This document shows, piece by piece, positions 2,052 to 25,626 of a stretch of DNA of 32,363 bases. Below the pieces are notes generated by a model. It did not search any database. It saw nothing but the letters and a program-made list of their open reading frames with translations, and had not been told where the DNA came from. The position numbers were made by a program, and so were the translations under genes. This stretch comes from Macrostomum lignano (lineage: Eukaryota): the NCBI GenBank assembly GCA_002269645.1, contig NIVC01004886.1, positions 1 through 32,363 of the forward strand, written 5' to 3'. Each line of letters starts with the position of its first letter. The stretch's first letter is position 1.

Positions 2052-3695
2052 TCAAAGGATGCTATCCCAGTTAAAGTCGTCTTCAACAACATCTTGGCCA
2101 GCATCGTGAGCCGGCCGGTGCGGCTGCTGCTGGCTTGGCGGCTGATGGTGGCCCCAGCGTGGCGGCAGCGGCGGCGGCGGCTGCGATCGAGCGGTCGCTT
2201 GGGCCTGACGCCGCTGCACATCGCTGCCGACAGTCGGCAGCGGGATGACGGCTGCCGTCGCTGCCGCTGGTCCGGCGCCACCCAGGCCGCCTTGATAGAC
2301 GTTGGACTCGGCAGCGGCGGGCGGGCGCGAGCCGGAGCGGCAGTGATCCCACAGGTCGTGCAGGGCGCTGTCCGACAGCTGGAAGCTGTCCTTCAACTGT
2401 GGCAGCATTCGCTGCACAAAGTCCAGCGTTGAAGCTGACAGGTCAGGTGGTTGGCAGGGCGCGCTAACGCCGCTGCCGCTGCTGCCGCCGCTGCCGCCGC
2501 TGCCGCCGCCGCCGCCAATCTCGATGCTAGCAAAAGCGCCGCTGCTGCCACCCGAGGAGGATTCGCCGAGCAGGGAGCGGCAGATTGTCTGCAGAGAAGC
2601 GCTCAGACTGAGCTGGTCTGTTGTGCCAGCCGACGGTGGTGACAGTGGCGGTGGCGGCGGAGTCAGACAGGGTGACGGATCCGGCCGGTTGGGAAGCTGC
2701 ATTGTTGCTGACGGCGCTGGCAGCTGCTGGGGCGCCTGAGCACCGGCCGACTCGGGAGCGAAGGCGGCTCCGAGCACCTGGTCGCTCTGGCTACCCATGA
2801 GTGCGGCCAAAGCGCCAACGGTGCTGTCTGTCAGAAGTCCGTCTTGGCCAGAGACACCGCTGGCCGCTAGTGGGGCCTGTTGCGGTGCCTCGCTCATGAA
2901 GCTGGCAAATCCCGGGGAGGAAGTGTTGCCGTTTTTAACGGCGCCAAGATCGACAACTCCATGCTGAGGATGTTGGTCGCCAGAGTCTGTCACAGTTATG
3001 GTTGGCATCCGCGTGGCTGAACTGGCCTGCGTGCTTTCGGGTCGGAATCCTTCTCTTAGACTCCAATAGCAGCCTTTACCCAGGTCGCCCTTGTCTCTTG
3101 GTACTTTGATGAAGCATTTGTTAAGAGACAGATTGTGCCGGATAGAATTCTAAAAGTTTATAAATATTTATTTTGGGTGGCTTCTGTATGCGAAACATGA
3201 ATAGTTTTCTTTATAAATCTACTTGATCAAATTTTAATCGAATATGCAATCAAGTTGTGATCGTTTTCAGAAAATTGCAAATCCAGTTTTTCAATTAATA
3301 AAAACGTATTTATGTGTTGCGTCAGTAGAACATTCAAAAAAGCAAAAAATCATTTATGTAAAAATTCAGTCAAAATATAACAATATACCTACCTTCCAAC
3401 CATTTCGAGCATCCTTATAATATGGAAAGTTGTCAGTGATCCATTTATATATTTGACGCAATGACATTCGCTTCGATCTGGTGCTTGAAATAGCAAATTT
3501 AATTAAAGTAGAATAGCTGTGGGATGGCTTCCCAGTCTCTCGCTCGATTGGTCGAAAATCCTCAAAGTGTTTCGAGCTTGATGGATTTGTGAGCGACAAG
3601 CTTGATTCCAGGAGCTCATTTTTTGCAGGAGTGATGTTTACATCGACTGCAGATAGCCAGTCCATTGTAGTTAGACTGTTATCACACTCTGCCAT
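2052..3695 (-). CDS. FoxJ2/3: Forkhead transcription factor, FoxJ2/3-like; 2 coding exons (3393-3695, 2052-3149), 466 aa
   Basis: Exon 1 ends ...[13 protein letters not shown] at AAG|GTAGGT (intron 3150-3392, phase 0). The acceptor TTTTAG| resumes [31 protein letters not shown], in frame with ORF 2052..3008. The forkhead domain is complete. The N-terminal SLTTMDWL and C-terminal DDFNWDSIL motifs resemble FoxJ2/J3 as I know them. Confidence 0.9.
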
Positions 3696-8640: not shown

Positions 8641-8727
8641 CAGATCGCCCCCAGTTTAACCTTGTTGCTAATCTGCCAATCGAACGGTCTCGCGCAACCC
8701 TCCATTGATGCTCAAAGCATCTCAAGC

Positions 8728-9210
8728 ATGAAGCTCGAACTGTGCAGCTTCTCCGGCTTCAAGGTTTACCCCGGCCGCGGCCGCTGGCTGATCCGCACGG
8801 ACGGCAAGACCTTCCACTTCCTGAACTCGAAGTGCGAGCGCTCCCACTTCCAGAAGAAGAACCCGCGCGAGGTCAGCTGGACTGTGCTGTACAGGCGCAA
8901 GCACAAGAAGGGCCAGGTGGAGGAGGCCGCCAAGAAGAAGTCGCGCAAGTCGCACAAGGCCATCCGCGCTGTGGCCGGCCTGTCCATGGCCGACCTCATG
9001 GCCAAGCGGAACCAGAAGCCGGAGTTCCGCAAGGCCCAGCGCGAACAGGCGGTCCGCAACGCCAAGGAGAAGGCCAAGGCAAAGGAAGCCGAGAAGAAGG
9101 CGCAGAAGCAGGCCGAGGCCAAGCAGGCTCGGGCTGGCGGCGCCGGCCAGAAGCAGAAGGCAGCCAAGGTGGTGAAGCCGAGCGCGCCGCGAGTTGGCGG
9201 CAAGCGCTAA
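8728..9210 (+). CDS. RPL24: 60S ribosomal protein L24 (eL24), 160 aa, intronless CDS
   Basis: [62 protein letters not shown] ... APRVGGKR is a clear eL24 sequence. Codons are strongly GC3. AATAAA at 9290-9295. The true start is M at 8728, not 8662. Confidence 0.97.
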
Positions 9211-9870: not shown

Positions 9871-11003
9871 AACCACTGCTGTGCTCCCACTTGCACGAGC
9901 TTTGTACTAGTGCTATTAACATCCGAGAAAGAAAAATCCGTTGCGAATGCATAAATTACCAAAAGATGACACTGGCGAAGCGCTGGCAGCAGCTACTACA
10001 GGAGCGTGGATATTGATCTTTATAAACAATTAAATCACGGGGCCTCCGTGTGTTCAGCTTGCACTTTATGGACGAGGCCTACTGCTGCCTTACAAAGTGC
10101 CACGGATGTGCAAGACATCTGTTTTCGCTGGGACGCAATCCCACACCAAGAGTTGATGCTGCCTCGGCTCGTTCAAATAGACCAGCTACCCTCTGTGCAA
10201 AGGACTGATAAACGATGAAGAGGCAGACGACATGTACCCTCCAGTGCTGGGGCCAATTAGCAATCTATCTGCAGCCGAGCCTGCGACTTGCCTGCTGCCA
10301 GTGCTGTGGCAGAGCAACCTTCGGCTACCAGATTCTGCGCCGAGAACAGCTGTTGCGGCTGAAAGCTCTCACCTCTGCAGCCGATTCGCGGGTTCCAAGC
10401 GCTAGAGGCAAAGATCAAGCGGCTGCAGCAACGATCCCGAAAGTGACAGGCGAATCAAGCGGCTGCAGCGGCAATCCCGAAAGTGACAGGCGAATCAAGC
10501 GGCTGCAGCGGCAATCCCGAAAGCGACAGGCAAATCAAGCGGCTGCAGCGGCAATCCCGAAAGCGACAGGCAAATCAAGCGGCTGCAGCGGCAATCCCGA
10601 AAGCGACAGGCAAATCAAGCGGCTGCAGCGGCAATCCCGAAAGCGACAGGCAAATCAAGCGGCTGCAGCGGCAACTCTCGATGGTCAAGGCAAGTGCAGC
10701 GCAGTCGTGCATCCATGGACTGTGGAGGCGTGGCTAGCGCAGCTTCCAGCGGTCGACTGGGCGGCAGGGCGCTCGCAGTCAGGGGTGCTCTGGTCAAAGG
10801 ATGTCATCTCATCAGCAGCTCATTGCAGCTGCACCACAAAAGTCCTGCTGCTTATCGGCTGCCTGTTACGAAACCACTGAGGATTGGCTCCATCGGATAC
10901 ATCCCTGGACCTTGAAGTGGCGCATTCGCCAGTTTTTTTCATCTGTTGGGCCGTTCTGAATGCTGCCTCTGAACAAGGGCGACTGGCGACCCTGTTCTTC
11001 GAC
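9871..11003 (+). pseudogene. Decayed THAP-domain P-type transposase (N-terminal part)
   Basis: Fragments in shifting frames: NHCCAPTC (9871), HKLPKD, AKRWQQL, RVFSLHF (CSxHF mutated), RWDAIP (THAP end), WSKDVIS + LQLHHKSPAAYRL (about 10791-10861), and GRLATLFFD (to 11003, first catalytic-Asp region). Confidence 0.7.
10408..10672. repeat. 40-bp tandem repeat, about 6.5 copies, inside the P element
   Basis: AATCAAGCGGCTGCAGCGGCAATCCCGAAAGYGACAGGCR with period 40 (10441, 10481, ...). Confidence 0.9.
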
Positions 11004-11904
11004 AGCACGCTGCGAGTTTCACAAACAGATGAGCTGATTAAGATGAGAAATCTTTCTATTTTGCTTCACGAATATGGATTATGGAGTATATGATATAGCT
11101 CGTATTTGCTAAATATACAATAGTAGACTGCAATAATATAGCCTTCTATGCAATCTAAAGCATTCACAATGTTGCTTTGAATTGTGGAAAGTATAATTAT
11201 AAGTTTCTTTTTGCAAAAAATCAATACAATTGCTGCATTGCATTCATCTGTTTTTTTATTTTAAAAAAATATAAATAACGCTAAAATGTTTTTACTACTA
11301 CTAAGCAGAAAGTAGAGTAAACTGTCGTGTTGTGAAAATTGGCTGGAGTGGCCTATCTAGTGTTTATAGTATCTGTGGTGTCAACTGCCTGCGATGGATG
11401 GCCGACTTTCGTATTGAAAGCTTGCTTTGGAAAGAAAAAAAAATATTGACTTCTGGTTTTTATTACAATGCGTCATATTTATATAGTAGCCAGAAATAAG
11501 CTAATCTGTACCGAATTTAAATTTACGCAAAATGGGAACATTGTAAAGCAATAATTGGGCATCAGAAATTGATTTATTATGCAACCAATTGTGTCAACTG
11601 ACGCCTGCATCAGCGCGCACTTTCTACTACTTGAAGTAGCAAAAGGCACAAGAGCTCACTAGTTTAGAATCCCTGCGTGATCTCAACCAGTGGCTAGTCC
11701 AAAATGCGAGTAGCAAGTAGCATAAGTCTACATGTGCAGTACAGTTATCACGGACAGCTGGATTAGAGGGACGCTGCACTCAATTTTTTAGTAGCCTAAT
11801 TTGTCTATGGCCAAACCCCATTCAGCGCTATGCGTTCGTTCCTTACCGGCCTCCAGCTTATTTCTAAGAAAACCTTCTCGAGCTGCGCGTTTGGATTATT
11901 GGAT

Positions 11905-12015
11905 TTTGCGCGCTTATACCAGTGCGCGCTTATACTATTGCGCACTTATGGCACTGCGCGTTTATACCAGTGCACACATACCAGTGCGCGCTTTCGTTAG
12001 TGCGCGCTTATACAT
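11905..12015. repeat. Short degenerate GCGCGCTTATACCAGT-type repeat
   Basis: About six imperfect copies. Confidence 0.6.
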
Positions 12016-12276
12016 AGCTATGTAGTTGAGTGCGCTTGCACTGGTTATGAAGGTGCCTCGATGATGATTCTCCACTCATATTTAGCCCACATTCGACATT
12101 AATATTCTCATCATCACTGGGACAAACGGCCATGTATTTCTCTTATCCAAACCAGGTTATTTATCTCGCAAATGTATTTAATTAACACCTGAAAAAGTTG
12201 AGATCTAAAATTTTCTTTCGTGTCATAGTTATTGGTAACTCGATCCCTTCATTAGAAATGCTTTGCTTTATAACAA

Positions 12277-12635
12277 AGGGGGTTGCAGCCTAGATAGGGG
12301 ATTGTAGCCTTAGATAGGGGATTGTAGCCTTAGATAGGGGATTGTAGCCTTAGCTAAGGGATTTTAGCCTTGTATAGGGGATTGTAGCCTTGTATAGGGG
12401 ATTGTAGCCTTAGATAGGGGATTGTAGCTTTGTATAGGGGATTGTAGCCTTAGATAGGGGATTTTAGCCTTAGATAGGGGATTGTAGCCTTAGATAGGGG
12501 ATTGTAGCCTTAGAAAGGGGATTGTAGCCTTAGAAAGGGGATTGTAGCCTTAGAAAGGGATTGTAGCCTTAGATAGGGGATTGTAGCCTTAGAAAGGGAT
12601 TGTAGCCTTAGATAGGGGATTGTAGTTTAGTATAA
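12277..12635. repeat. 20-bp minisatellite (GGGGATTGTAGCCTTAGATA), about 17 copies, abutting the SINE head
   Basis: Direct inspection. Confidence 0.9.
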
Positions 12636-12920
12636 GGGGTTGTAGCCTAGTGGTTAGAGCGTCTGATTCACGACTTTAAGGTCGGGGGTTCGATTCCCGA
12701 TCCCCCAGGAAAAATTTGTGTCCTTGAGGAAGACACTTAACTCTTGCTTTAGTTCACCCAGCTGTAAAATGGGTGCCAGCATTAGCTGGGGTAATTGAGG
12801 GCGTGTGGCGACCCCCCAGTCCTTGGACTGAACAGCCGTACGCAGCCTTCCGATGCGCCGCGCAATAGCTGCGGCTGAGCTGTCGGTTGGCCTATTAAGG
12901 CAGGTGAAATCAATTATTAT
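12636..12920 (+). mobile_element. tRNA-derived SINE, family A
   Basis: A box TAGCCTAGTGG (12643-53) and B box GGTTCGATTCC (12687-97), with a degenerate cloverleaf. The body GTCCTTGAGGAAGACACTTAAC...CACCCAGCTGTAAAATGGGT resembles conserved central domains of tRNA SINEs. It has an AT-rich tail. Confidence 0.75.
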
Positions 12921-13736
12921 TTATAACGAAAACAAAATAATTTGATCGATTATTTTAGATTGTGTTGCTAGGCGGCCACAATAATCAAAAGTTCGTAATG
13001 CCCTTGGCACAATGTTTGCGTTCCGGAAAATTCGGAATCAAAATTCATTCGATTTATGACGGCAATTTATGACCTTCGTGGCCGCAATCGCTTGATGAAG
13101 ACTGAAATTCATTAAAATTCTGATTCCGTTATCAGAGTTTTGGATGGCCAAGCAAATCTCTTGAAGGGATTATCTGTAAGCTGCTGCCGCTAATGCTGTT
13201 AATCTGACTCACTAGAAGGGCTCTGACCTGCCTCCTCTCCTTAAATCCCGCGCGCAGCGCTTGTAATTAATGTCTCCCCTCTCGACTGGAAATGCCGGTC
13301 CAAATAAACAGTCCGCTTTACTTTGCATTCCCCCCAATGGCTGTAGGCAAAGGCTTCAATATATTGCATATTATATACTGCCTGCCTGCAATACTAGTAT
13401 TCAGGGCGGGACACTGCGAAGCTCTGATTTCAAGGAAAACACGGCAGCAAATAGAGGGGAGGATGGGGGGGGGTAAGTGGGGTGGGGGGAAGGAAAGGAA
13501 AGGAGCGATCGGTGAAAAATGCGAATACATTTAGCATAGGCCTTCGCCGCACCGGTTCAGCACTGCGGAGAGATTGAGATACAGCATAAGGCATAGCATA
13601 GAATATAACGGTTCGGCATTGAACAAAAATAGAGGCAGGAAGATGGCTTAGGCAAATTTTCTATTGGCCCATGGCCCCCATTGGATCGTATTGATTGCAC
13701 AGTCACCTCGCCTCTGTAGCGCAGCTGCAGCATGCA

Positions 13737-13742
13737 TATAAA
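13737..13742 (+). promoter_or_regulatory. Candidate TATA box of the secreted follistatin-like gene
   Basis: TATAAA about 100 nt upstream of ATG 13842. Confidence 0.35.
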
Positions 13743-13841
13743 TGCATGCAACCGGCACTAGCCCGGCAAGCCTGCCTGCACACTGACTGTCCTGAATACC
13801 GCTTCATCGGCCAGTCTTTCTTTGTCAAGCAACTCTGCACA

Positions 13842-16800
13842 ATGCTGCTGTTGAGGGCCCTCATTCTGGCTTTGCCAGCTGCTGCGGCTCTGGTGACCTC
13901 TGACTCCAGCTGCAGACAGGCGGCAGTCCCGGCCGACTGCTCTAGGAGGGACCTGCGCCGCTGCGGCCGTCCGATAGCCAGCCGGTGCCAGTCGGCATCG
14001 CCGAGCATGCCCAGGCCTCGGTGGTGCCGTTGCTGCATCGACTGCGACACCGCTAGACTTGGCGCCGATGCCGGCGCCACCGTAGGCGACAAGACCAGCT
14101 CGCGGCGCCAACTGCGACGGCGACTGCGTCGACTTGTGCGACGTCTCGGCGCTAATCGCGACGCAGCTGACGGTCGGCGGCTGCCAGCAGCCCGGCGCGA
14201 CCGGATGATGGAGCAGCTGCTGGATCTGGAGCTGCGCCTGCTCAGCCTGAGAAAACGCAGGCGCAAAAGTGCAAAAAGAGGCCGAAAGAAAAACACAAGG
14301 AATGCAGCAGCAGCTGAGACTGCAGTCTCGGCAGGCAAAAGCAAAATTGGAGGCGGCCGCGGTGCCTGGAGCCCTGGCAGTCTGGAGCAGCAATATTTTG
14401 TTGACAGACCGGCCTCTCAAACAGGTGCGGCCAACTCAGCTGAGAACGGCACTGAGGCCAGCTCAGGCCGGATTCTGGCTTTGATGAGCTATCTGGAGGG
14501 GCAGAGGACGGATAAAGTGAAAGGTAGGTGGCTTGGTGTGTACTATAGGTTCCGGGTTCGATGCACGAGCAAAACTATTAAAGTACTTTCAAAAGCCCAA
14601 AACTTGGTAACCTGAAACTTCATAATTCCTAGCCTATACACGGAGTGCTTTATTATAACAACCGTTTGGGGTTGCTGGGGTTGCAAATTTCTGAATCGCC
14701 CAAGTGGTTTCACATTCACACGCTCACACAGGGTGAACAGCGGCCCTGACTTTTTAATTGTCAGGCATTTACACTCTGTGTGCCCTGGGGGTTGGCCCTC
14801 ATGGCTGTGAATCGCACTTCAACCCATGGGTCAATTTTTCGTTCACAAGCCCCAAGTGAATGAGTGTTTGCGCACGGAATCGAACCAAGGGATCGCGGCC
14901 CGAGAGTCAGGCGCCTTTGCCGCGAGCTGCTCTGCATTTCGAACCTATCGATCTACTCTCGTAATTAAAAAATGCAAAATTAAACAGTCTTCAGTGTAGA
15001 GAGTTAAGTGTTGAAACGCTCATCAACTGCTACACCTGTGTTGTTCGGATTTTAACCTCGAGTTGAAAAAATTGCGCAGCGACTCTGGCAATTTTAACGC
15101 ACTGCAAATTTCAAACCATATTTATAGTTACGCGTGCAGTCGGCGGGAGTGCAGAGCGCGCAGTTGCGTCAATCAGGGCTTGCCATGCAATTTGGCCTGG
15201 CCAGACTATTTGCATAGCAACTAGGTCTGTCACCAAATCTATGTGAACCATTAATTAGATCTAGGCACAGTTTAGATTAGAAAACCATAAACTGGCCTGC
15301 GAAACAAGGACTGTCAGCTACAGCTGACCTGCCCAAAGTGCCATTAGGGGGGGGGAAGTGAAGTTCAGTTCCTGATTAAGTGTAGTTGGGAATTTTTGTA
15401 GTGCTTCCCGTGATAAATTTGAACCGGAAATCTTGAGGAAAAGTTCCAAAGTTTAAAAACCTAACCTATTGACTCAAGAAGACAGAGACAGAATGGATGG
15501 AATTCTAGCAAAATTTATCAAAGACATGACACAAGCCAGGTTGCAACTGCCCTGAAGGCTTCACATTTTTTTCTTTGAAAATTTAATAATCTGCCCCCTC
15601 TCGTGCACATTTACTAATAGTAGTACAATAAAAAAATAATATTCAAACCCCATATTCGAGCTGTCAACCGTTCGCAATGCTAAGCAAAAAAGCAAAGCAT
15701 TCAAAACGAAACAAATGTGGGTCCCGGTCGCATCTTTTAGGCTTGAAAATTTCTATACACCTCCTGTGTATAGCTATAGGGTATATTTTTATTGTGCACT
15801 AAACAACAGGAAGAGAGCAATGATGCCAGTTCGCTGGGGCGAAAGACTGACTCCCTCTCTGCCTTTCTCTCTCACTGTACGAGCCAGCTGTTTTTCACCC
15901 CCATTGTGTTGTAAATAAGCCTATTGAGCGTCTCATTGAAAGGCAACAATAAGGTTGCTCATCGAGTCCATGCAGATATAAGAGGCGAACGCAGTGCAAT
16001 AAAAATGTGCAAAGACAGCGCAGCAGGCTGCAACACTGGAAGAGCCAAAGGCACGCAGGCCGGCCACCGCCATGATTCCCGCCGCGCTAGTCGAAGCCGT
16101 CCAACGGGACAGCGTCGATGCTCTGCGCCGCCTGCTGACCTCCACGCCGCCGTCGCCCGACACTCTGTCGGCTGCCCTGGCGCTGGCCGCCGCCCTGCCC
16201 TGCCAGCTGGAAACGGCGGCCGTCTTGCTGGAATTCGGCGCCAACCCGGAGCGCGCCTTGGCCCTGGTAGCCGCCTGCGATCAGGACAGGCGCGACTGTC
16301 CGGAATTGGCGCGCCTATTGGTGGCGCGCGGCGCCAGCGTCAACCAGGTCAGCCGGCCGGACGGCAAGCCGGCGCTGCTGCTGGCGGTGCGGCGCGGCCA
16401 CGCGGGCCTGACGCGCCAGCTGATTGAGGCTCGAGCCGACGTCAACCTGGCTGAGCCGAATCTCCGCTGGACGCCGCTGCTGGCTGCCGTCAGCATCGAC
16501 CGGCCGGATCTGGCCAAGCTGCTCCTGGATGCCCGCGCCGACCCCAACGCCATGAGCTCGGACGGCACTGCGCTGGCAATGGCCGCCTGCCGCGGCCATC
16601 CCGGCCTCGTCCGCCTCCTGCTCGATCGCCGAGCCGATCCGAATCTCTGCGCACCCGTTGACCCGGATGCGAAACCGGATGCGGACCAGGACGCTGATCC
16701 GGACGATCTGGACAGCTACAGCCCGCTGGCCTACGCCGCCTGCAACGGGCACCGCGAGTGCGTGGAGCTCCTGCTGCGAGCCGGTGCGCGGCCCGACACC

Positions 16801-19800
16801 CCGACAAGCGCACTGGGCCGCACGCCGCTAATCCTGGCCGCCCTGAACGGCCACGCCGGCGTCGCTGCCGCCCTGCTGGCCGCCGGCGCCAACCCGAATC
16901 TGGCCGAACCGCTCCACCGCTGGACGCCGCTAGTAACGGCGGTGCACACCGACGCCGTCGAGGTTGTGAATGTCCTCCTGGCCGACCGGCGGACCGACGT
17001 CAACTGGCTGACCGACGACGGCACCGCTCTGGCCAAGGCGGCCGAGGCTGGCAACGTTGCCTTGGTGACGCGCTTGCTGTCGGCCGGGGCAGACGCCGAC
17101 AAAGCCGACGAGGTGGACGGGCACACGCCGCTGATGTGGGCGGCCCAGTCCGGCCACGCTGGAGCCATCGAGCGCCTACTGAGCCGCGGTGCCCGGCCGG
17201 AGCGCGAGAACTCGGCCGGCCAGTCGGCCATCCTGCTGGCCGCCTGCAACGGCCATGCCGCGGCTCTGGAGCAGCTGCTGAGGCGCTCGGAAAGCAGCGC
17301 CGCGAAGCAGCAGGCGGTCAACGCCGCCATGCAGGCCGTGGCTGGCGACGCAGGCAGGCAGCTGGAGCCGGGCGTGGCTCGGCGCATTCGCAACCTGATG
17401 GAGACGGCTCGGGAAGAGTGAGTGCTCGGTTTGTTTGCTTTTAGCTCTGCCCATTGATACGGGTCTGCGAGAATTGTGCGATGAGCTTAATCTACAGGGG
17501 GCGCCAGCTACAGGGGGGGCACCAGCTACAGAGGGGGCACCAGCTACAGGGGGGGCACCAGCTACAGAGGGGGCACCAGCTACAGAGGGGGCGCCAGCTA
17601 CAGAGGGGGCACCAGCTACAGGGGGGCACCAGCTACAGAGGGGGCACCAGCTACAGGGGGGCACCAGCTACAGAGGGGGCACCAGCTACAGAGGGGGCGC
17701 CAGCTACAGAGGGGGCACCAGCTACAGAGGGGGCGCCAGCTACAGAGGGGGCGCCAGCTACAGAGGGGGCACCAGCTACAGGGGGGCACCAGCTACAGAG
17801 GGGGCACCAGCTACAGGGGGGCACCAGCTACAGAGGGGGCACCAGCTACAGGGGGGGCACCAGCTACAGAGGGGGCACCAGCTACAGAGGGGGCGCCAGC
17901 TAGAGAGGGGGCACCAGCTACAGAGGGGGCGCCAGCTACAGAGGGGGCGCCAGCTACAGAGGGGGCACCAGCTACAGGGGGGGCACCAGCTACAGTAGGG
18001 CTGGCTAGAAAAGTCCAGGACGCTGGCTGCTTACCGACAACCTATTTCACGAGTAGAAGATAAGATTAGGCAGGAAAATCTCATAAATTCCGGGGTGAGT
18101 TCTCATGCTCTCATAGAAAGGCTTGACTAGATTGATTTTCCACTCGCTGTCTTGGTGCCTAAATAAAGGTAAACAAGTCTCATTTAAATAGTCCAGACTC
18201 AGTATTATGTTCACTTGAAGTACATTTGTTGGATTCAGATTGACTTCTTTTCGCGTCATAGATTTTATTTTAAATCCGCTCGTAATTCTTCACCATTTCA
18301 GAGTGGTGGAGAACCAGAGCAACAATCTGGTTGGCGGTCTGGTCTCGCCAAAGTCGGGCCGCTCTGTCAGGGACAGCAGCGGAGTTCCCGGGCCAGCCGC
18401 CGCCGCCTCCGCCGCTGTCGCCGCCCCTGCAGCCCCTCCCGTAGTGAGCGGCACCATGACCCGACTGATCAGCAGCCAGACGGTGCTGCCACAGTGAGTT
18501 CTCAAAGAGGGTAGCTGAGATGCCAACTCTCAAAGAGGGTAGCTGAGATGCCAAACTCTCAAAGAGGGTAGCTGAGATGCCAACTCTCAAAGAGGGTAGC
18601 TGAGATGCCAAAACTCTCAAAGAGGGTAGCTGAGATGCCAACTCTCAAAGAGGGTAGCTGAGATGCCAAAACTCTCAAAGAGGGTAGCTGAGATGCCAAC
18701 TCTCAAAGAGGGTAGCTGAGATGCCAACTCTCAAAGAGGGTAGCTGAGATGCCAACTCTCAAAGAGGGTAGCTGAGATGCCAACTCTCAAAGAGGGTAGC
18801 TGAGATGCCAACTCTCAAAGAGGGTAGCTGAGATGCCAACTCTCAAAGAGGGTAGCTGAGATGCCAAAACTCTCAAAGAGGGTTGCTGAGATGCCAAACT
18901 CTCAAAGAGGGTTGCTGAGATGCCAAACTCTCAAAGAGGGTAGCTGAGATGCCAAAACTCTCAAGGAGGGTAGCTGAGATGCCAAAACTCTCAAGGAGGG
19001 TAGCTGAGATGCCAAAACTCTCAAAGAGGGTTGCTGAGATGCCAAAACTCTCAAAGAGGGTAGCTGAGATGCCAACTCTCAAAGAGGGTAGCTGAGATGC
19101 CAACTCTCAAAGAGGGTAGCTGAGATGCCAACTCTCAAAGAGGGTAGCTGAGATGCCAAAACTCTCAAGAGGGTAGCTGAGTAGCTGAGATGCCAACTCT
19201 CAAAGAGGGTAGCTGAGATGCCAAAACTCTCAAAGAGGGTTGCTGAGATGCCAAACTCTCAAAGAGGGTTGCTGAGATGCCAAACTCTCAAAGAGGGTTG
19301 CTGAGATGCCAAACTCTCAAAGAGGGTTGCTGAGATGCCAAACTCTCAAAGAGGGTAGCTGAGATGCCAAAACTCTCAAGGAGGGTAGCTGAGATGCCAA
19401 AACTCTCAAGGAGGGTAGCTGAGATGCCAAAACTCTCAAAGAGGGTTGCTGAGATGCCAAAAAAGAGGGTAGCTGAGATGCCAACTCTCAAAGAGGGTAG
19501 CTGAGATGCCAACTCTCAAAGAGGGTAGCTGAGATGCCAACTCTCAAAGAGGGTAGCTGAGATGCCAACTCTCAAAGAGGGTAGCTGAGATGCTCTCAAA
19601 GAGGGTTGCTGAGATGCCAACTCTCAAAGAGGGTAGCTGAGATGCCAACTCTCAAAGAGGGTAGCTGAGATGCCAACTCTCAAAGAGGGTTCTCAAGCTG
19701 AGATGCCAAACTGAGATGCTCTCAAAGAGGGTTGCTGAGATGCCAAACTCTCAAAGAGGGTAGCTGAGATGCCAAAACTCTCAAGGAGCTGAGATGCCAG

Positions 19801-22800
19801 CTGAGATGCCAAAACTCTCAAGGAGGGTAGCTGAGATGCCAAAACTCTCAAAGAGGGTTGCTGAGATGCCAAAGCTCAAAGAGGGTTTACTCGTAGAAAA
19901 GTACAAAGATCTGCCAACTCTCAATTGCTGAAAACCTAAGTTCCGATTTTTGATGCCATTTTCATCCCCAGAGGCTTCCTGCAGAGCCTGGACATCCGCC
20001 GCGACACCCTTCGGTACAAAGATCTTTCACTCGCAATTGCTAAAACCTAAGTTCCGATTTTTTATCGCCATTTTCATCCCCAGCGGCTTCCTGCAGAGCC
20101 TGGACATCCGCCGCGACACACCTGAGCCAAGGTCATTTCGGCTGCGTCTACCAAGCCCAGCGCGCTGACGGTCACTACGTGGTGCTCAAAGTGGTGTCCG
20201 CTCCATTTCGGCCCAACCAGCCTGACCAGGCTAGCTCAGTCTCCGAGGCCAACCGGCGCGAGGTCGAACTGATGCAGGCGATGAGGCACCGGAACATTGT
20301 GCAGTTCTACACCGCCCAGCTGGTGCCCGGCTCGCTCGTCATCTGCATGGAGTACATCCACGGCGAGAACCTCCGGCTGTACAGGCAGCGCCTCGGCAGC
20401 CTGGCAGAGTCATTGATCGTCAATTACCTGAGCCAGATCTGCCACGGCCTGAACTATGTGCACAGCCAGAATGTCTGTCATCGCGATGTCAAGTGCGAGA
20501 ACATCATGCTGCAGCTGTCCACCGGCCTGGTGAAGATCATTGACTTCGGCTTGTCAAAGAAGATTCACGCCACTGAAGTGTACCATTCAGGAGTTGGCAC
20601 CCTGCTGTGGATGGCCCCGGAGGTGCTGCTATTTGCCGAGGATCCGACACGTCGTCGGCGGCGCTACGACCCGAAGGCCGCCGATGTGTACTCGCTCGGC
20701 TGCAGCCTGCACGAGCTGTGCACCGGGGTGCCGCCGCTGTACAGCGAGGAGGGCCCGGGCTTCCTCAAGTGCCTGTACCACGCCAAGCGGACCGATGAGC
20801 CGCTGCCCGAGGACGCCCTGCTGCGCTGCGGCATGAGCCAGAGCCTCCGCTCCTTCTATGCGGCCTGCGTAGCCAAGAATCCATTGGCCAGGCCGACCCT
20901 GCCGCAGCTGCTGGCGCATCCCCTCATTGTTGGAGCCGCCTACTGACTCCTCTATTTAATGTATTGTTGCCGACTGACGGACCTTGGCGTTCACGAGTTC
21001 TATTAGAAATTCTGTTATTCAGACTGTACGGCTTTTTATTGAGAAATTTATTCCAGCTGCAGATGCTAAAATATACAGCTCGAATTTATTGTTGGCTTGC
21101 TATCTTATAACTGATAGAATTCAATGGAGAGTGACAGTATTATCAGATATTTACAGTACTATCAACAGTACTATCAACAGACTATCTACAGTGCTATCTA
21201 CAGTACTATCTACAGTACTATCAACAGACTATCTACAGTGCTATCTACAGTACTATCTACAGTACTATCAACAGACTATCTACAGTACTATCTATACAGT
21301 ACTATCTACAGTACTATCTACAGTACTATCAACAGACTATCTACAGTGCTATCTACAGTACTATCTACAGTACTATCAACAGACTATCTACAGTACTATC
21401 TATACAGTACTATCTACAGTACTATCTACAGTACTATCTACAGTGCTATCTACAGTACTATCTACAGTACTATCTACAGTACTATCAACAGACTATCTAC
21501 AGTACTATCTATACAGTACTATCTACAGTACTATCAACAGACTATCTACAGTACTATCTATACAGTACTATCTACAGTACTATCTACAGTACTATCTACA
21601 GTACTGTCTACAGTACTATCTACAGTATTATCTACAGTGCTATTTACAGCACTATCTACAGTAATATTTACAGCAGTATACATCGACTATGATTATGATC
21701 AATTATGATATCTGCGGGCAGAGCAGCCCCGGCAGTTCGTGCAGTTCACAGCCATGAGGGCCAACCCCAAGGCACAGAGAGTGTACATGCCTGACGGTTA
21801 GAAAGTCAGGGCCACTGTACACCCCGTGTGTGAGTTCCTATTATGATTTATTTTTAAAAAACTTAAATTTACTGCCAAGGCATAATAAAAGTTGCCGCCG
21901 AATCTCCACGCAGCCACCTGCCGTTCGGTGACCTGCAGCTGGGACAAGGGCCAGCTGTGCCTGGTAAACATCCAGGACCTGCCAATCTGCAGCTGCGTCA
22001 CCAACGATCGCTGCCTCGCAGAACGGCGCAGACTTCGTCAACGCCGACGCAACGGACGTCGCCGATCGGGAAGGCGTCGAGGTCGTCGGCGGCCGCGTCG
22101 CAACGGTTTGGACGGCCGGTCGAATGTCACGACGACGGAGTCGACGCCGCTGATTAAGCGGCAGTTCTTTGGCCGGGTCTGCGCCCTGCTGAGCGGCCTG
22201 CCTGCCGAGCGCAGCTACACCAGCCTCTGCCACATGCAGGCCGCCGCCTGCGCCAGCGACTCGCAGGTGAGCAGTCAGGGCGGCTGGATTCTCGAGAGTC
22301 AATTTGAGAACAGCACTGATTCTGTTTGAGAACAGCACAGATTCTGTTTGAGAACAGCACAGATTCTGTTTGAGAACAGCACTGATTCTGTTTGAGAACA
22401 GCACTGATTCTGTTTGAGAACAGCACTGATTCTGTTTGAGAACAGCACAGATTCTGTTTGAGAACAGCACTGATTCTGTTTGAGAACAGGCCTAAATATG
22501 CTTATAAAGAGCAATAAATCTGTTGAAAACAGTTTTTTAAGCCTAGATTAAAATCCCCCCAAGGGAGAATCGCCCCAAAGCACAGGTGAGAATCGCCCCA
22601 AAGCACAGGTGAGAATCGCCCCAAAGCACAGGTGAGAATCGCCCCAAAGCACAGGCAGAATCGCCCCAAAGCACAGGTGAGAATCACCCCAAAGCACAGT
22701 GAGAATCGCCTCAAAGCACAGGTGAGAATCACCCCAAAGCACAGGTGAGAATCGCCCCAAAACACAGGTGAGAATCACCCCAAAGCACAGGTGAGAATCG

Positions 22801-23495
22801 CCCCAAAGCACAGGTGAGAATCGCCCCAAAGCACAGGTGAGAATCACCCCAAAACACAGGTGAGAATCGCCTCAAAGCACAGGTGAGAATCACCCCAAAG
22901 CACAGGTGCGAATCGCCTCAAAGCACAGGCAGAATCGCCTCAAAGCACAGGTGAGAATCACCCCAAAGCACAGGTGAGAATCGCCTCAAAGCACAGGTGA
23001 GAATCACCCCAAAGCACAGGTGAGAATCGCCTCAAAGCACAGGTGAGAATCGCCCCAAAGCACAGGTGAGAATCACCCCAAAGCACAGGTGAGAATCGCC
23101 CCAAAACACAGGCAGAATCGCCCCAAAGCACAGGTGAGAATCGCCCCAAAGCACAGGTGAGAATCACCCCAAAGCACAAATGAGAATCACCCCAAAGCAC
23201 AGGTGAGAATCACTCAAAGCCCATGTGAGAATCCTTCTGTCACTGCAAGAAAATCAAATTACAGTCTCAGCCAAGACAATTCACATTCAACCCAAAACTG
23301 AAAACAACTCCAATTAAGGTTCTGCGCCTGTCCAATGGCGCCTGCTCCAATCACGACCCGGAGTCGGAGGCCCTGGAGACTCTCACTAATCAAACGTGCG
23401 CCAGATGCCAGGCGCGCGGTTGGCGCGGCAGAGGCTGCAAAAAATGGCGCCGCAAATGCCGGAGGCCGCCGGTTCTGTCAAGTGACGAATTCTGA
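13842..23495 (+). CDS. Predicted secreted, Arg/Lys-rich follistatin(FOLN)-Kazal protein with an N-terminal IGFBP-like Cys motif; 3 exons (13842-14523, 21914-22266, 23319-23495), about 403 aa
   Basis: Exon 1 has a signal peptide ([16 protein letters not shown]), a Cys cluster ending WCRCCIDC, and a donor AAAG|GTAGGT (phase 1). Exon 2 has acceptor CCACGCAG| (phase 1), FOLN-like TCRSVTC...LC...[11 protein letters not shown], Kazal-like VCA...[13 protein letters not shown], and donor CAG|GTGAGC (phase 0). Exon 3 has acceptor ATTAAG| (phase 0) and VLRLSNGAC completes the Kazal; TGA at 23493-95, AATAAA at 23539-44. The exon 2-3 join is strong. The exon 1-2 join is inferred from phase and from the lack of any other signal-peptide exon nearby. 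Confidence 0.65.
14706..14937 (-). mobile_element. tRNA-derived SINE, family B, near full length
   Basis: On the minus strand there is a tRNA-like head GCAGAGCAGCTCGCGGCAAAGG and a B box GGTTCGATTCC (14876-86). The 3' body is shared with 21716-21834 and 26951-27106. Confidence 0.75.
15977..15984 (+). promoter_or_regulatory. Candidate TATA box of the ANK-kinase gene
   Basis: TATAAGAG about 90 nt upstream of a strong Kozak ATG at 16072. Confidence 0.3.
16072..20946 (+). CDS. Ankyrin-repeat (about 12) + Ser/Thr protein kinase (STE/MAP3K-like) gene; 3 exons (16072-17417, 18302-18493, 20084 or 20097-20946), about 795-799 aa
   Basis: CCACCGCCATG start. The apparent ANK stop overlaps a donor (GA|GTGAGT). 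The middle exon is bounded by TTTCAG| and CA|GTGAGT. All junctions are phase 2. The kinase has [35 protein letters not shown] and DVYSLG. The frame at the start of exon 3 is ambiguous (see findings). Confidence 0.8.
17492..17995. repeat. 18-19-bp G-rich minisatellite (CAGCTACAGAGGGGGCAC) in ANK-kinase intron 1
   Basis: About 27 copies. It explains the GAPATE and GTSYRG ORFs. Confidence 0.92.
18500..19886. repeat. 28-30-bp minisatellite (CTCTCAAAGAGGGTAGCTGAGATGCCAA) filling ANK-kinase intron 2
   Basis: It starts right after the donor GTGAGT. Units become ragged after about 19150. Confidence 0.92.
21140..21670. repeat. 12-bp tandem array (TACAGTACTATC) with variants
   Basis: Direct inspection. 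It explains the STIY and YYLQ ORFs. Confidence 0.92.
21716..21834 (+). mobile_element. SINE family B, internally deleted copy
   Basis: Head remnant GCAGAGCAGC joined to the body CACAGCCATGAGGGCCAACCCC...AAAGTCAGGGCC...GTGTGAG. Confidence 0.7.
21914..22266 (+). CDS. Exon encoding FOLN + most of a Kazal domain, split by an Arg-rich insert
   Basis: The Cys pattern matches follistatin/SPARC-type FOLN-Kazal. It is flanked by AG and GTGAGC. Confidence 0.8.
22301..22488. repeat. 22-bp minisatellite (TTTGAGAACAGCACWGATTCTG), about 8.5 copies
   Basis: Period 22; lies in intron 2 of the follistatin-like gene. Confidence 0.9.
22565..23225. repeat. 23-bp minisatellite (GAGAATCRCCCCAAAGCACAGGT), about 29 copies
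   Basis: Direct inspection; same intron. Confidence 0.92.
23319..23495 (+). CDS. Terminal exon (absent from the ORF track): end of Kazal + basic four-Cys tail
   Basis: Translates to [58 protein letters not shown]. It is phase-0 compatible with the donor at 22266 and is followed by AATAAA. Confidence 0.8.
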   Translation, partial: VLRLSNGACSNHDPESEALETLTNQTCARCQARGWRGRGCKKWRRKCRRPPVLSSDEF

Positions 23496-24277
23496 GCAGT
23501 TCTGACTGCATCCTGGAGTCTGGTTGGCATCAAAAGTGAATAAAATTCTTATTTGTTGTGAAGTTTCTTTTCCTGTTGTGTGCAGTTAAACAAAACTAAT
23601 TAAAATAATTATTTTTCGCCCTAGTAGAAATGTAGCAAAGGCCGAGATGCACTAGCGAGATAGGAATTGTTAGCACTTAAATTAAAAAATTGTCTGTGGT
23701 TGAAACCCCAATTATTGCAATACAATATTCTACATGTAATGTAAAAACTTTAAAAATTCGAATTCCCTAACTCGCTAGACGCTAGTGCAGTTTGAGTTTG
23801 AAATGAAATTAAGTTGGCCTTCAAATAAACTTCCCTTTCTCTTACTACCTGACTGGAATGAGGAAATCCTTTAGCAGGCTATTGATGATTGCCAATGAAA
23901 GAGATGAGAGAGAAGAGAGAAGAGAGCTGAGACGAGAGACAAGCCTTGAGCGGGCCTGGATTGCTATTGTGAAGTTTCAAAGTACCCGAGGGCTGGCCGG
24001 AGTTTAGAGCGTGAATTAAAGTCGGTCACAGTCATTATTTAATATTTATCTATCTATTTATTTATTTATTCATTTATTTTTTCACATAAGTCGACAACTC
24101 TCAGCCACAGATCTCTGAAACACTGCATGAATGGGCAAATTTTTTAGTTACTGATGATACTACTTACATTTGGGCGTCTGTTTAGAGTTTTGTCGTGATA
24201 GATTTGCGTTTCAAAAAGTTACTCAGCAGTCAAGCGAAATCTGCGTTCGGGAGTTTAAATATTGACTGCCGGCCATA

Positions 24278-24825
24278 GGTTAGGGTGGTTTAGGCTAGAG
24301 CTATGTTAAAGTTTAGGTTAGAGTTTATTTTAGGGTTTAGGTTAGGGTTTAGGTTAGGTTTTGAGTCAGAATTTAAGTTAGGGTTACAGTTTAGGTTAAG
24401 GTTAGAGTTTAGGTCAGGGTTACAGTTTAGGTTAAGGTTAGAGTTTAGGTCAGGGTTACAGTTTAGGTTAAGGTTAGAGTTTAGGTCAGGGTTACAGTTT
24501 AGGTTAAGGTTAGAGTTTAGGTCAGGGTTACAGTTTAGGTTAAGGTTAGAGTTTAGGTCAGGGTTACAGTTTAGGTTAAGGTTAGAGTTTAGGTCAGGGT
24601 TACAGTTTAGGTTAGGGTTAGGTTGGGGTTAGGGTTAGGGTTTTGGTTAGGGTTAGTGTTTAGGTTAGAGTTTAGGTTAGGGTTTAGGTTAGGTTTAAAG
24701 TTTAGGTTAGGGTTTAGGTTAGGGTTAGAGTTTAGGTTAGGGTTTAGGTTAGGTTTAAAGTTTAGGTTAGGGTTTAGGTTAGGGTTAGAGTTTAGGTTAG
24801 GGTTTAGGTTGGAGCTTAGGTTGGG
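24278..24825. repeat. Interstitial TTAGGG-like hexamer array with a 36-bp higher-order unit
   Basis: TTAGGG, TTAGGT, TTAAGG and TTAGAG variants; 36-bp period over about 24380-24615. Confidence 0.88.
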
Positions 24826-25349: not shown

Positions 25350-25626
25350 AGTCAGTCAGTCAGTCAGTCAGTCAGTCAGTCAGTCAGTCAGTCAGTCAGT
25401 CAGTCAGTCAGTCAGTCAGTCAGTCAGTCAGTCAGTCAGTCAGTCAGTCAGTCAGTCAGTCAGTCAGTCAGTCAGTCAGTCAGTCAGTCAGTCAGTCAGT
25501 CAGTCAGTCAGTCAGTCAGTCAGTCAGTCAGTCAGTCAGTCAGTCAGTCAGTCAGTCAGTCAGTCAGTCAGTCAGTCAGTCAGTCAGTCAGTCAGTCAGT
25601 CAGTCAGTTAGTCAGTCAGTCAGTCA
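25350..25626. repeat. (AGTC)n microsatellite, about 69 units
   Basis: Near-perfect, with one TTAG variant near 25607. Confidence 0.97.

Follow-up and report, generated by a model that had tools for sequence, protein, structure and literature searches.

We examined contig NIVC01004886.1 of the Macrostomum lignano assembly GCA_002269645.1 (Mlig_3_7; positions 1 to 32,363 of the forward strand; this whole stretch of 32,363 nt is referred to as the window) and found a three-exon gene that combines ankyrin repeats (ANK) with a protein kinase domain, Mlig024801, within intron 1 of another gene, Mlig029094, which runs in the same direction and is here called the host gene. We consider this same-strand pair to be genuine, with a host mRNA that joins exon 1 to exon 2 across a 7.39-kb intron, at a probability of about 0.85. 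The arrangement had been proposed from the letters of the DNA (the original prediction), and indeed both genes are annotated separately in GenBank: the host with a coding span of 13746-23495 (+), and an ANK gene at 16072-20168 on the same (+) strand within host intron 1 (14524-21913). The nested coding sequence as delimited here (16072-20946) also lies wholly inside this intron, and the same layout is found at three other loci.

When positions 13842-14523, 21914-22266 and 23319-23495 of the (+) strand are joined, an open frame of 403 aa results that ends at 23495. As had been predicted, the donor (AAG/GTAGGT after 14523) and the acceptor (CACGCAG/ before 21914) of the long intron are both in phase 1; the last base of exon 2 is 22266, followed by the donor CAG/GTGAGC with its GT at 22267-22268. 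The protein search with the 403-aa product returned a sole match, PAA46387.1 (hypothetical protein BOX15_Mlig029094g4, Macrostomum lignano; 435 aa), which contains the product with 100% identity and 100% query coverage. Because of this identity, the GenBank model must use the 14523/21914 junction. The 32 extra residues of PAA46387.1 stem from an upstream ATG at 13746 and stand ahead of the signal-like segment. This ATG sits in a 15-bp segment that is deleted at a paralogous locus (L002; its 9900-10000 region compared with window positions 13746-13841), where the annotated host protein begins at the equivalent of 13842; since ATG 13746 is missing there, we regard 13842 as the conserved start. 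Through the same deletion, L002 has also lost part of the TATA-like box upstream of the host gene.

Exon 2 depends on an exon further upstream: its Cys-rich frame needs one base from such an exon, the next ATG is Met367 of the annotated protein, and exons 2-3 hold neither a start codon for this frame nor a signal peptide. We scanned positions 10000-21913 for all ATG-initiated open segments that end in a phase-1 GT. Besides exon 1, a single hydrophobic phase-1 candidate passed, positioned upstream of exon 1, and no other ATG-initiated hydrophobic phase-1 exon was found between 20947 and 21913. With no credible alternative between the nested stop and exon 2, the segment 13842-14523 remains the nearest exon with a signal-like N-terminus. 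The interval 20946-21914 contains the 12-bp array (21148-21673) and the fragment of a short interspersed element (SINE)-like repeat (21739-21835) that had been described for it, and in addition ~200 nt of unique sequence. The unusual composition said to be common to the host exons was recovered as well: Arg makes up 17.2% of exon 1 and 18.8% of exons 2+3 (8.0% of the nested protein), and the Cys counts are 8 and 14, respectively.

To these observations come the other copies of the locus. We compared the window with contigs NIVC01002599 (L002), NIVC01002382 (L003) and NIVC01001985 (L004). All four show the same gene order with both genes on the + strand, identical host splice sites (4/4 loci) and a host intron 1 of 7.2-7.5 kb, and the flanking genes within the fetched stretches agree, including a gene for the ribosomal protein L24e upstream in L002. 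The nested-in-host layout is annotated at three loci (window, L002 and L003) and is seen in the sequence of L004, where indels in exon 1 leave a host product of only 69 aa; at the other three, the host protein is annotated in full length and always with the junction ...DKVK-A-TCRSV.... As layout and splice sites recur in three other contigs, the misassembly that the original prediction had named as a possible refutation is unlikely. Hardly any difference from the window is seen in L003 and L004, and L002, a contig of 158 kb with the same flanking genes, is ~1-1.5% diverged. Mlig_3_7 is an assembly of a hidden polyploid with known redundancy (PMC5730564), which the divergence of L002 fits. We also observed single-base deletions in L003 (in CCCGGG, 5453 region) and in L002 (in GCCCG, 16924-16926 region), both in homopolymers; exon 1 of L004 (1700-2370) aligns with 9 gaps and not a single mismatch. 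All these small indels look like long-read consensus errors; they explain the differing lengths of the annotated products (765, 495 and 69 aa). The features of the locus are collected in Table 1.

Table 1. Positions of host gene, nested gene and associated elements in the window
Feature	Position	Strand	Evidence and remarks
TATA-like box CATATAAATG	13734..13743	+	sequence and motif scan; ~100 nt 5' of host start codon; putative promoter
Host coding exon 1 (BOX15_Mlig029094g4)	13842..14523	+	hydrophobic signal-like N-terminus from ATG 13842, 8 Cys, Arg-rich helices
Host intron 1	14524..21913	+	7,390 nt; holds entire nested gene; from coding ranges of both annotated genes
SINE-like repeat, copy A	14690..14950		pairing arm 14720-14817, starts 197 nt 3' of exon-1 donor
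TATAAG, candidate own promoter of nested gene	15977..15982	+	motif scan; 95 nt 5' of nested ATG
Nested exon 1 (BOX15_Mlig024801g3), ankyrin repeats	16072..17417	+	Pfam Ank_2 E = 1.7e-90; annotated product P0008
18-bp minisatellite, 28 copies	17496..18000		nested intron 1
Nested exon 2, linker of 192 nt	18302..18493	+	good acceptor TTTCAG, donor ACA/GTGAGT
28/29-bp minisatellite, 47 copies	18500..19886		nested intron 2
112-bp tandem duplication	19901..20119		spans acceptor and first bases of kinase exon; followed by 8-bp deletion between 20119 and 20120
Nested exon 3, Ser/Thr protein kinase domain	20084..20946	+	Pfam Pkinase E = 3.1e-57; stop 20944-20946
12-bp minisatellite, 44 copies	21148..21673		between nested stop and host exon 2
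SINE-like repeat, copy B, in opposite orientation to copy A	21739..21835		ends 78 nt 5' of exon-2 acceptor
First canonical AATAAA past nested stop	21884..21889	+	motif scan; ends 24 nt 5' of host exon 2
Host exon 2	21914..22266	+	six-Cys module with FOLN-like spacing, Arg-rich insert, first part of Kazal-like stretch
Host intron 2	22267..23318	+	22-bp array 22303-22489 and 23-bp array 22565-23233
Host exon 3	23319..23495	+	acceptor TTAAG/ before 23319; stop codon included
AATAAA, likely host poly(A) signal	23539..23544	+	44 nt 3' of host stop

Products of the nested gene and the host gene

The nested gene had been described as a whole three-exon ANK-kinase. Its three exons (junctions 17417/18302 and 18493/20084) and both domains are present, but in this copy, as assembled, its reading frame is not intact: the kinase exon does not continue the frame of nested exon 2, the break being caused by the 8-bp deletion that follows the tandem duplication. 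For this reason GenBank annotates just an ANK protein of 540 aa, which ends with a TGA at 20166-20168. Duplication and deletion (CCTTCGGT; window 19901-20130) are present in this contig only, compared with the three other loci, and at L002 a single annotated nested product of 765 aa carries both the ANK and the Pkinase domain. A frame-corrected composite of the undamaged parts yields an ANK-kinase of 802 aa with HRD, DFG and APE motifs, whose kinase domain has its nearest solved structures in the STE group (TAO2, MAP3K5 and MAP4K1). Rescue of the kinase frame by a mini-exon that uses the duplicated acceptor at ~19972 was considered and rejected, the other three loci having neither the duplication nor the deletion. 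The deletion also happens to bring the kinase exon into frame with host exon 1, so that splicing between these two would, in this copy alone, produce an uninterrupted fusion of 514 aa, which we regard as a coincidence. The genes Mlig029094, Mlig024801 and Mlig008546 are named nowhere in the searchable papers and supplements, and hence no expression data were found.

Judging by its sequence, the host gene encodes a lineage-restricted protein that is very rich in Arg and Cys, begins with a signal-like segment and contains a Kazal-like module in degenerate form. The follistatin/Kazal label of the original prediction is partly supported: Kazal_2 matches below the Pfam cut-off (18-21 bits versus 22.8; exons 2+3 score 18.0 bits with E = 0.0033, the isolated half 21.1 bits with E = 0.00035), and Kazal_2, Kazal_CFAI and Kazal_C6 all match the same 28 residues (99-127 of the exon 2+3 protein), each under its cut-off. 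The follistatin part drew no support from the searches. The follistatin N-terminal domain (FOLN, Pfam PF09289) gave no match on the isolated N-terminal half (E up to 10) or on exons 2+3 (E up to 1), and a sequence search among solved structures gave no follistatin or SPARC but only spurious TAL-effector repeats. The single-sequence AlphaFold model has a mean predicted local distance difference test score (pLDDT) of 50.8, with ~50-60 over the module, which is too low for a fold search.

Modules of the follistatin-like (FS) type in SPARC, follistatin and agrin consist of an N-terminal FOLN hairpin and a Kazal-like domain. By eye, the host cysteines are spaced C-x4-C-x7-C-x9-C-x-C-x5-C and then C-x15-C-x6-C-x13-C, with Y-x3-C, which resembles the FS pattern. 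The host module is like an FS module in this spacing and in the three Kazal models that meet on residues 99-127; it is unlike one in that these matches are sub-threshold, that FOLN is missing, that the module is split by an Arg-rich insert of ~50 residues, and that no FS protein appeared among solved structures or in the large protein searches. Outside M. lignano, no homologue of the host protein turned up in a word-indexed search or when 1.84 billion representatives were scanned exhaustively with HMMER; the only match of the HMMER scan was the 69-aa product of L004. A 36-aa JGI member of the protein cluster was dismissed as unrelated noise.

Probable bypassing of the nested gene

Host transcription would have to read through the nested gene, and the host transcript would have to ignore its splice sites. 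The acceptors of nested exon 2 (TTTCAG, pyrimidine fraction 0.72) and of the kinase exon (CCCCAG, 0.78) look better than that of host exon 2 (ACGCAG, 0.61), and therefore the bypass problem raised by the original prediction is real. Splicing of exon 1 to nested exon 2 leads to a stop after 47 codons, splicing to the kinase exon shifts the frame in intact copies, and retention of intron 1 leads to a stop after 30 codons. In intact copies, transcripts in which exon 1 enters either nested exon would thus meet a premature stop, be non-productive and probably be degraded by nonsense-mediated decay. As for the 3' end of the nested gene, neither AATAAA nor ATTAAA occurs within 938 nt 3' of the nested stop, which suggests a weak or distant nested poly(A) site that host transcription may pass. 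If the first canonical AATAAA (21884-21889) is used, nested 3'-end cleavage and the host 3' splice site would compete for the same few bases. The original prediction had concluded that the two genes must be expressed exclusively of each other or that a dedicated skipping mechanism exists. This does not necessarily follow, as mutually exclusive promoter use leaves the nested splice sites in the host pre-mRNA.

The two inverted SINE-like copies at both ends of intron 1 possibly fold the nested gene out. Their arms (14720-14817 and 21739-21835) are 82-91% complementary, with a predicted duplex energy of -169 kcal/mol (-58 +/- 6 in 200 shuffles), a value that is expected for any two inverted copies of the same family. 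The contig has three copies of the repeat; the probability of such a pair by random placement is ~3.5e-4, for a pair that was noticed post hoc. Copies A and B are 87% identical, which is not above the 90% identity to the third copy outside the gene, and thus give no hint that pairing has been selected for; the paralogous loci are too similar for a covariation test of the arms. The element matches no tRNA or Rfam family. We tentatively propose, as a rather doubtful possibility, that the pair acts as an RNA bridge which would place the exon-1 donor beside the weaker exon-2 acceptor, while the nested gene with its stronger acceptors is sequestered in a 6.9-kb loop. If this is true, the transposon pair is what makes same-strand nesting workable. 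A precedent may be seen in inverted intronic Alu pairs, which cause exon skipping by looping-out (PMC13019027).

Alternative explanations for the host transcript

The GenBank models of M. lignano derive from STAR/StringTie/TACO assemblies of RNA-seq data merged with a de novo transcriptome, and the pipeline cut transcripts at experimentally mapped spliced-leader and poly(A) sites (PMC5730564). Via this deposited RNA-seq-based annotation, the 14523/21914 junction may be taken as transcript-supported. A protein search with the 95-aa peptide across the exon 1/2 junction gave 0 matches; as it also missed the GenBank protein itself, it is uninformative.

Several points weigh against our reading. 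The junction reaches us through the deposited annotation alone, and this annotation comes from a pipeline, TBONE, with a step that merges a transcript with an open reading frame (ORF) but no poly(A) site with the next, ORF-less transcript. The nested acceptors look stronger than the acceptor of exon 2, and splice-site strength does not explain efficient skipping. Exon 1 has no excess of G/C at third codon positions (GC3; 0.64/0.62/0.65 by codon position), whereas exon 2 and the nested exons reach 0.79-0.85 at position 3. Of the changes in exon 1 relative to L002, 7 are non-synonymous and 3 synonymous, a neutral-looking ratio, although at ~1% divergence the copies have too few differences to decide and such a comparison of non-synonymous and synonymous rates has almost no power. 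Finally, no evidence of purifying selection on the fused ORF could be drawn from homologues, none being found beyond M. lignano, and the host gene may, going by these sequence comparisons, be young or fast-evolving.

The last three of these points, together with the low confidence of the AlphaFold model, also favour a view in which the exons are truly spliced, yet into a host transcript that is of low level, without function or of very recent origin, with a recently recruited exon 1 and an unselected fused ORF. We consider this unlikely: the signal-like N-terminus starts right at the first conserved ATG, exon 1 shows 0 indels in its 682 nt relative to L002 (but 4 gaps in the 543 nt upstream), the number of cysteines is even (8 + 14), the Kazal-like stretch is picked up by three Kazal models, and the neutral-looking changes come from the nearly powerless test just described.

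It is very unlikely that the nesting is no real mRNA structure but an artefact of annotation, in which the pipeline fused two distinct transcripts, one with exon 1 and the other with exons 2-3. The merge step of TBONE acts on transcripts up to 10 kb apart with a repetitive spacer, provided that the second has a poly(A) site (PMC5730564), and reads were allowed up to 1000 multi-mapping positions (PMC5730564); moreover, intron retention would give exon 1 its own in-frame stop (14613-14615), and the missing GC3 bias of exon 1 fits a separate origin. However, such a merge would not yield a coding join precisely at a GT donor and an AG acceptor with matched phases and an open frame, the spacer contains an annotated gene and not repeats alone, and exons 2-3 would be left without a start codon for the Cys-rich frame and without a signal peptide. 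As weak evidence against the artefact, exact sequence look-ups of the intron-retained exon-1 product returned 0 records.

Least probable, and in our view scarcely credible, is that exon 1, the ANK-kinase and exons 2-3 follow one another as cistrons of a single polycistronic transcript, with the 21913 acceptor as a spliced-leader trans-splice site. In favour of it, ~15% of the genes of M. lignano are assigned to operons by a criterion of <1 kb between genes after subtraction of repeats (PMC8629364); nested stop and exon 2 are 968 nt apart, ~620 nt of which is minisatellite and SINE-like repeat; and past the nested stop the sole canonical AATAAA is found 24 nt 5' of the exon-2 acceptor, resembling the poly(A)/trans-splice spacing of operons. 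Against it, the terminal ATG of the leader would read ATG CCA CCT GCC GTT CGG TGA into exon 2, where the seventh codon is a stop; the Cys-rich frame requires its upstream base and has no ATG before Met367; the trans-splice motif [T/C]TNCAG is not matched by the acceptor ACGCAG; and the pipeline that cuts at leader sites left exons 1 and 2 joined at 3 loci. Taken together, we retain the reading in which the host mRNA joins exon 1 to exon 2 in cis across the nested gene.

Neighbourhood of the locus and relation to known systems

Each intron of the host and of the nested gene has its own minisatellite, and the array lengths vary among the paralogous loci. The 23-bp unit in host intron 2 (22565-23233) reads GCACAG/GTGAGAATC, i.e. 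a consensus 5' splice site in a recursive-site-like AG/GT context, which is repeated 29 times past the real donor; the 12-bp and 18-bp units contain CTACAG. Upstream of the host gene (~4.6 kb 5') lies the intronless L24e gene (165 aa, 8713-9210 (+), Pfam E = 6e-29), which occupies the same relative place in L002. Downstream we found a degenerate TTAGG-like array with 12/18/72-bp periods and strong GC skew (24288-24822) and a perfect (AGTC)69 microsatellite (25350-25626). A 318-aa ORF at 2052-3008 (-), located in a 65% GC island, has no Pfam match; the annotation of the GenBank record was consulted for 3746-32363, to the right of this ORF.

The original prediction had taken it as established that most nested genes are antisense to their host. 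This could not be upheld, as a 2024 survey of mouse and human reports just a slight bias towards opposite orientation, same-orientation nesting being nearly as frequent (PMC11694760). Treating same-strand nesting as exceptional is therefore overstated, and no dedicated mechanism is implied by it. As the pair is already publicly annotated and same-strand nested genes are common and well surveyed, its biological addition is small; what the case does illustrate is that a correct long-range exon join is recoverable from raw sequence alone. In M. lignano, a species capable of transgenesis, the locus also raises the question of how exon 1 avoids the stronger nested acceptors and which share the inverted repeats might have in it.

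Compared with the spliced-leader operons of M. lignano and nematodes (PMC8629364), the locus is alike in its same-strand genes, which are close to each other after repeat subtraction, and in a poly(A) hexamer just 5' of the next acceptor; it is unlike them in that exon 2 lacks a start codon, the leader ATG would be out of frame, a trans-splice motif is missing and exon 2 is annotated in cis with exon 1. With the looping-out by Alu pairs it shares inverted SINE-like copies that flank the skipped region and a long, stable predicted duplex, whereas here the skipped part would be a whole gene of 4.9 kb with its own promoter-like element instead of a cassette exon belonging to the spliced gene itself, the repeats are of another family, and the case is known from sequence. 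The closest match is the class of host/nested pairs surveyed in mouse and human, which take in more than one tenth of all genes and favour long 5' introns (PMC11694760). Like these, the flatworm pair places a full gene in the most 5' and longest intron of the host, the preferred site; it differs in being a flatworm case with a multi-exon nested gene and otherwise shows no departure from the class. The pair is thus an ordinary member of this class, already recorded in the GenBank annotation.

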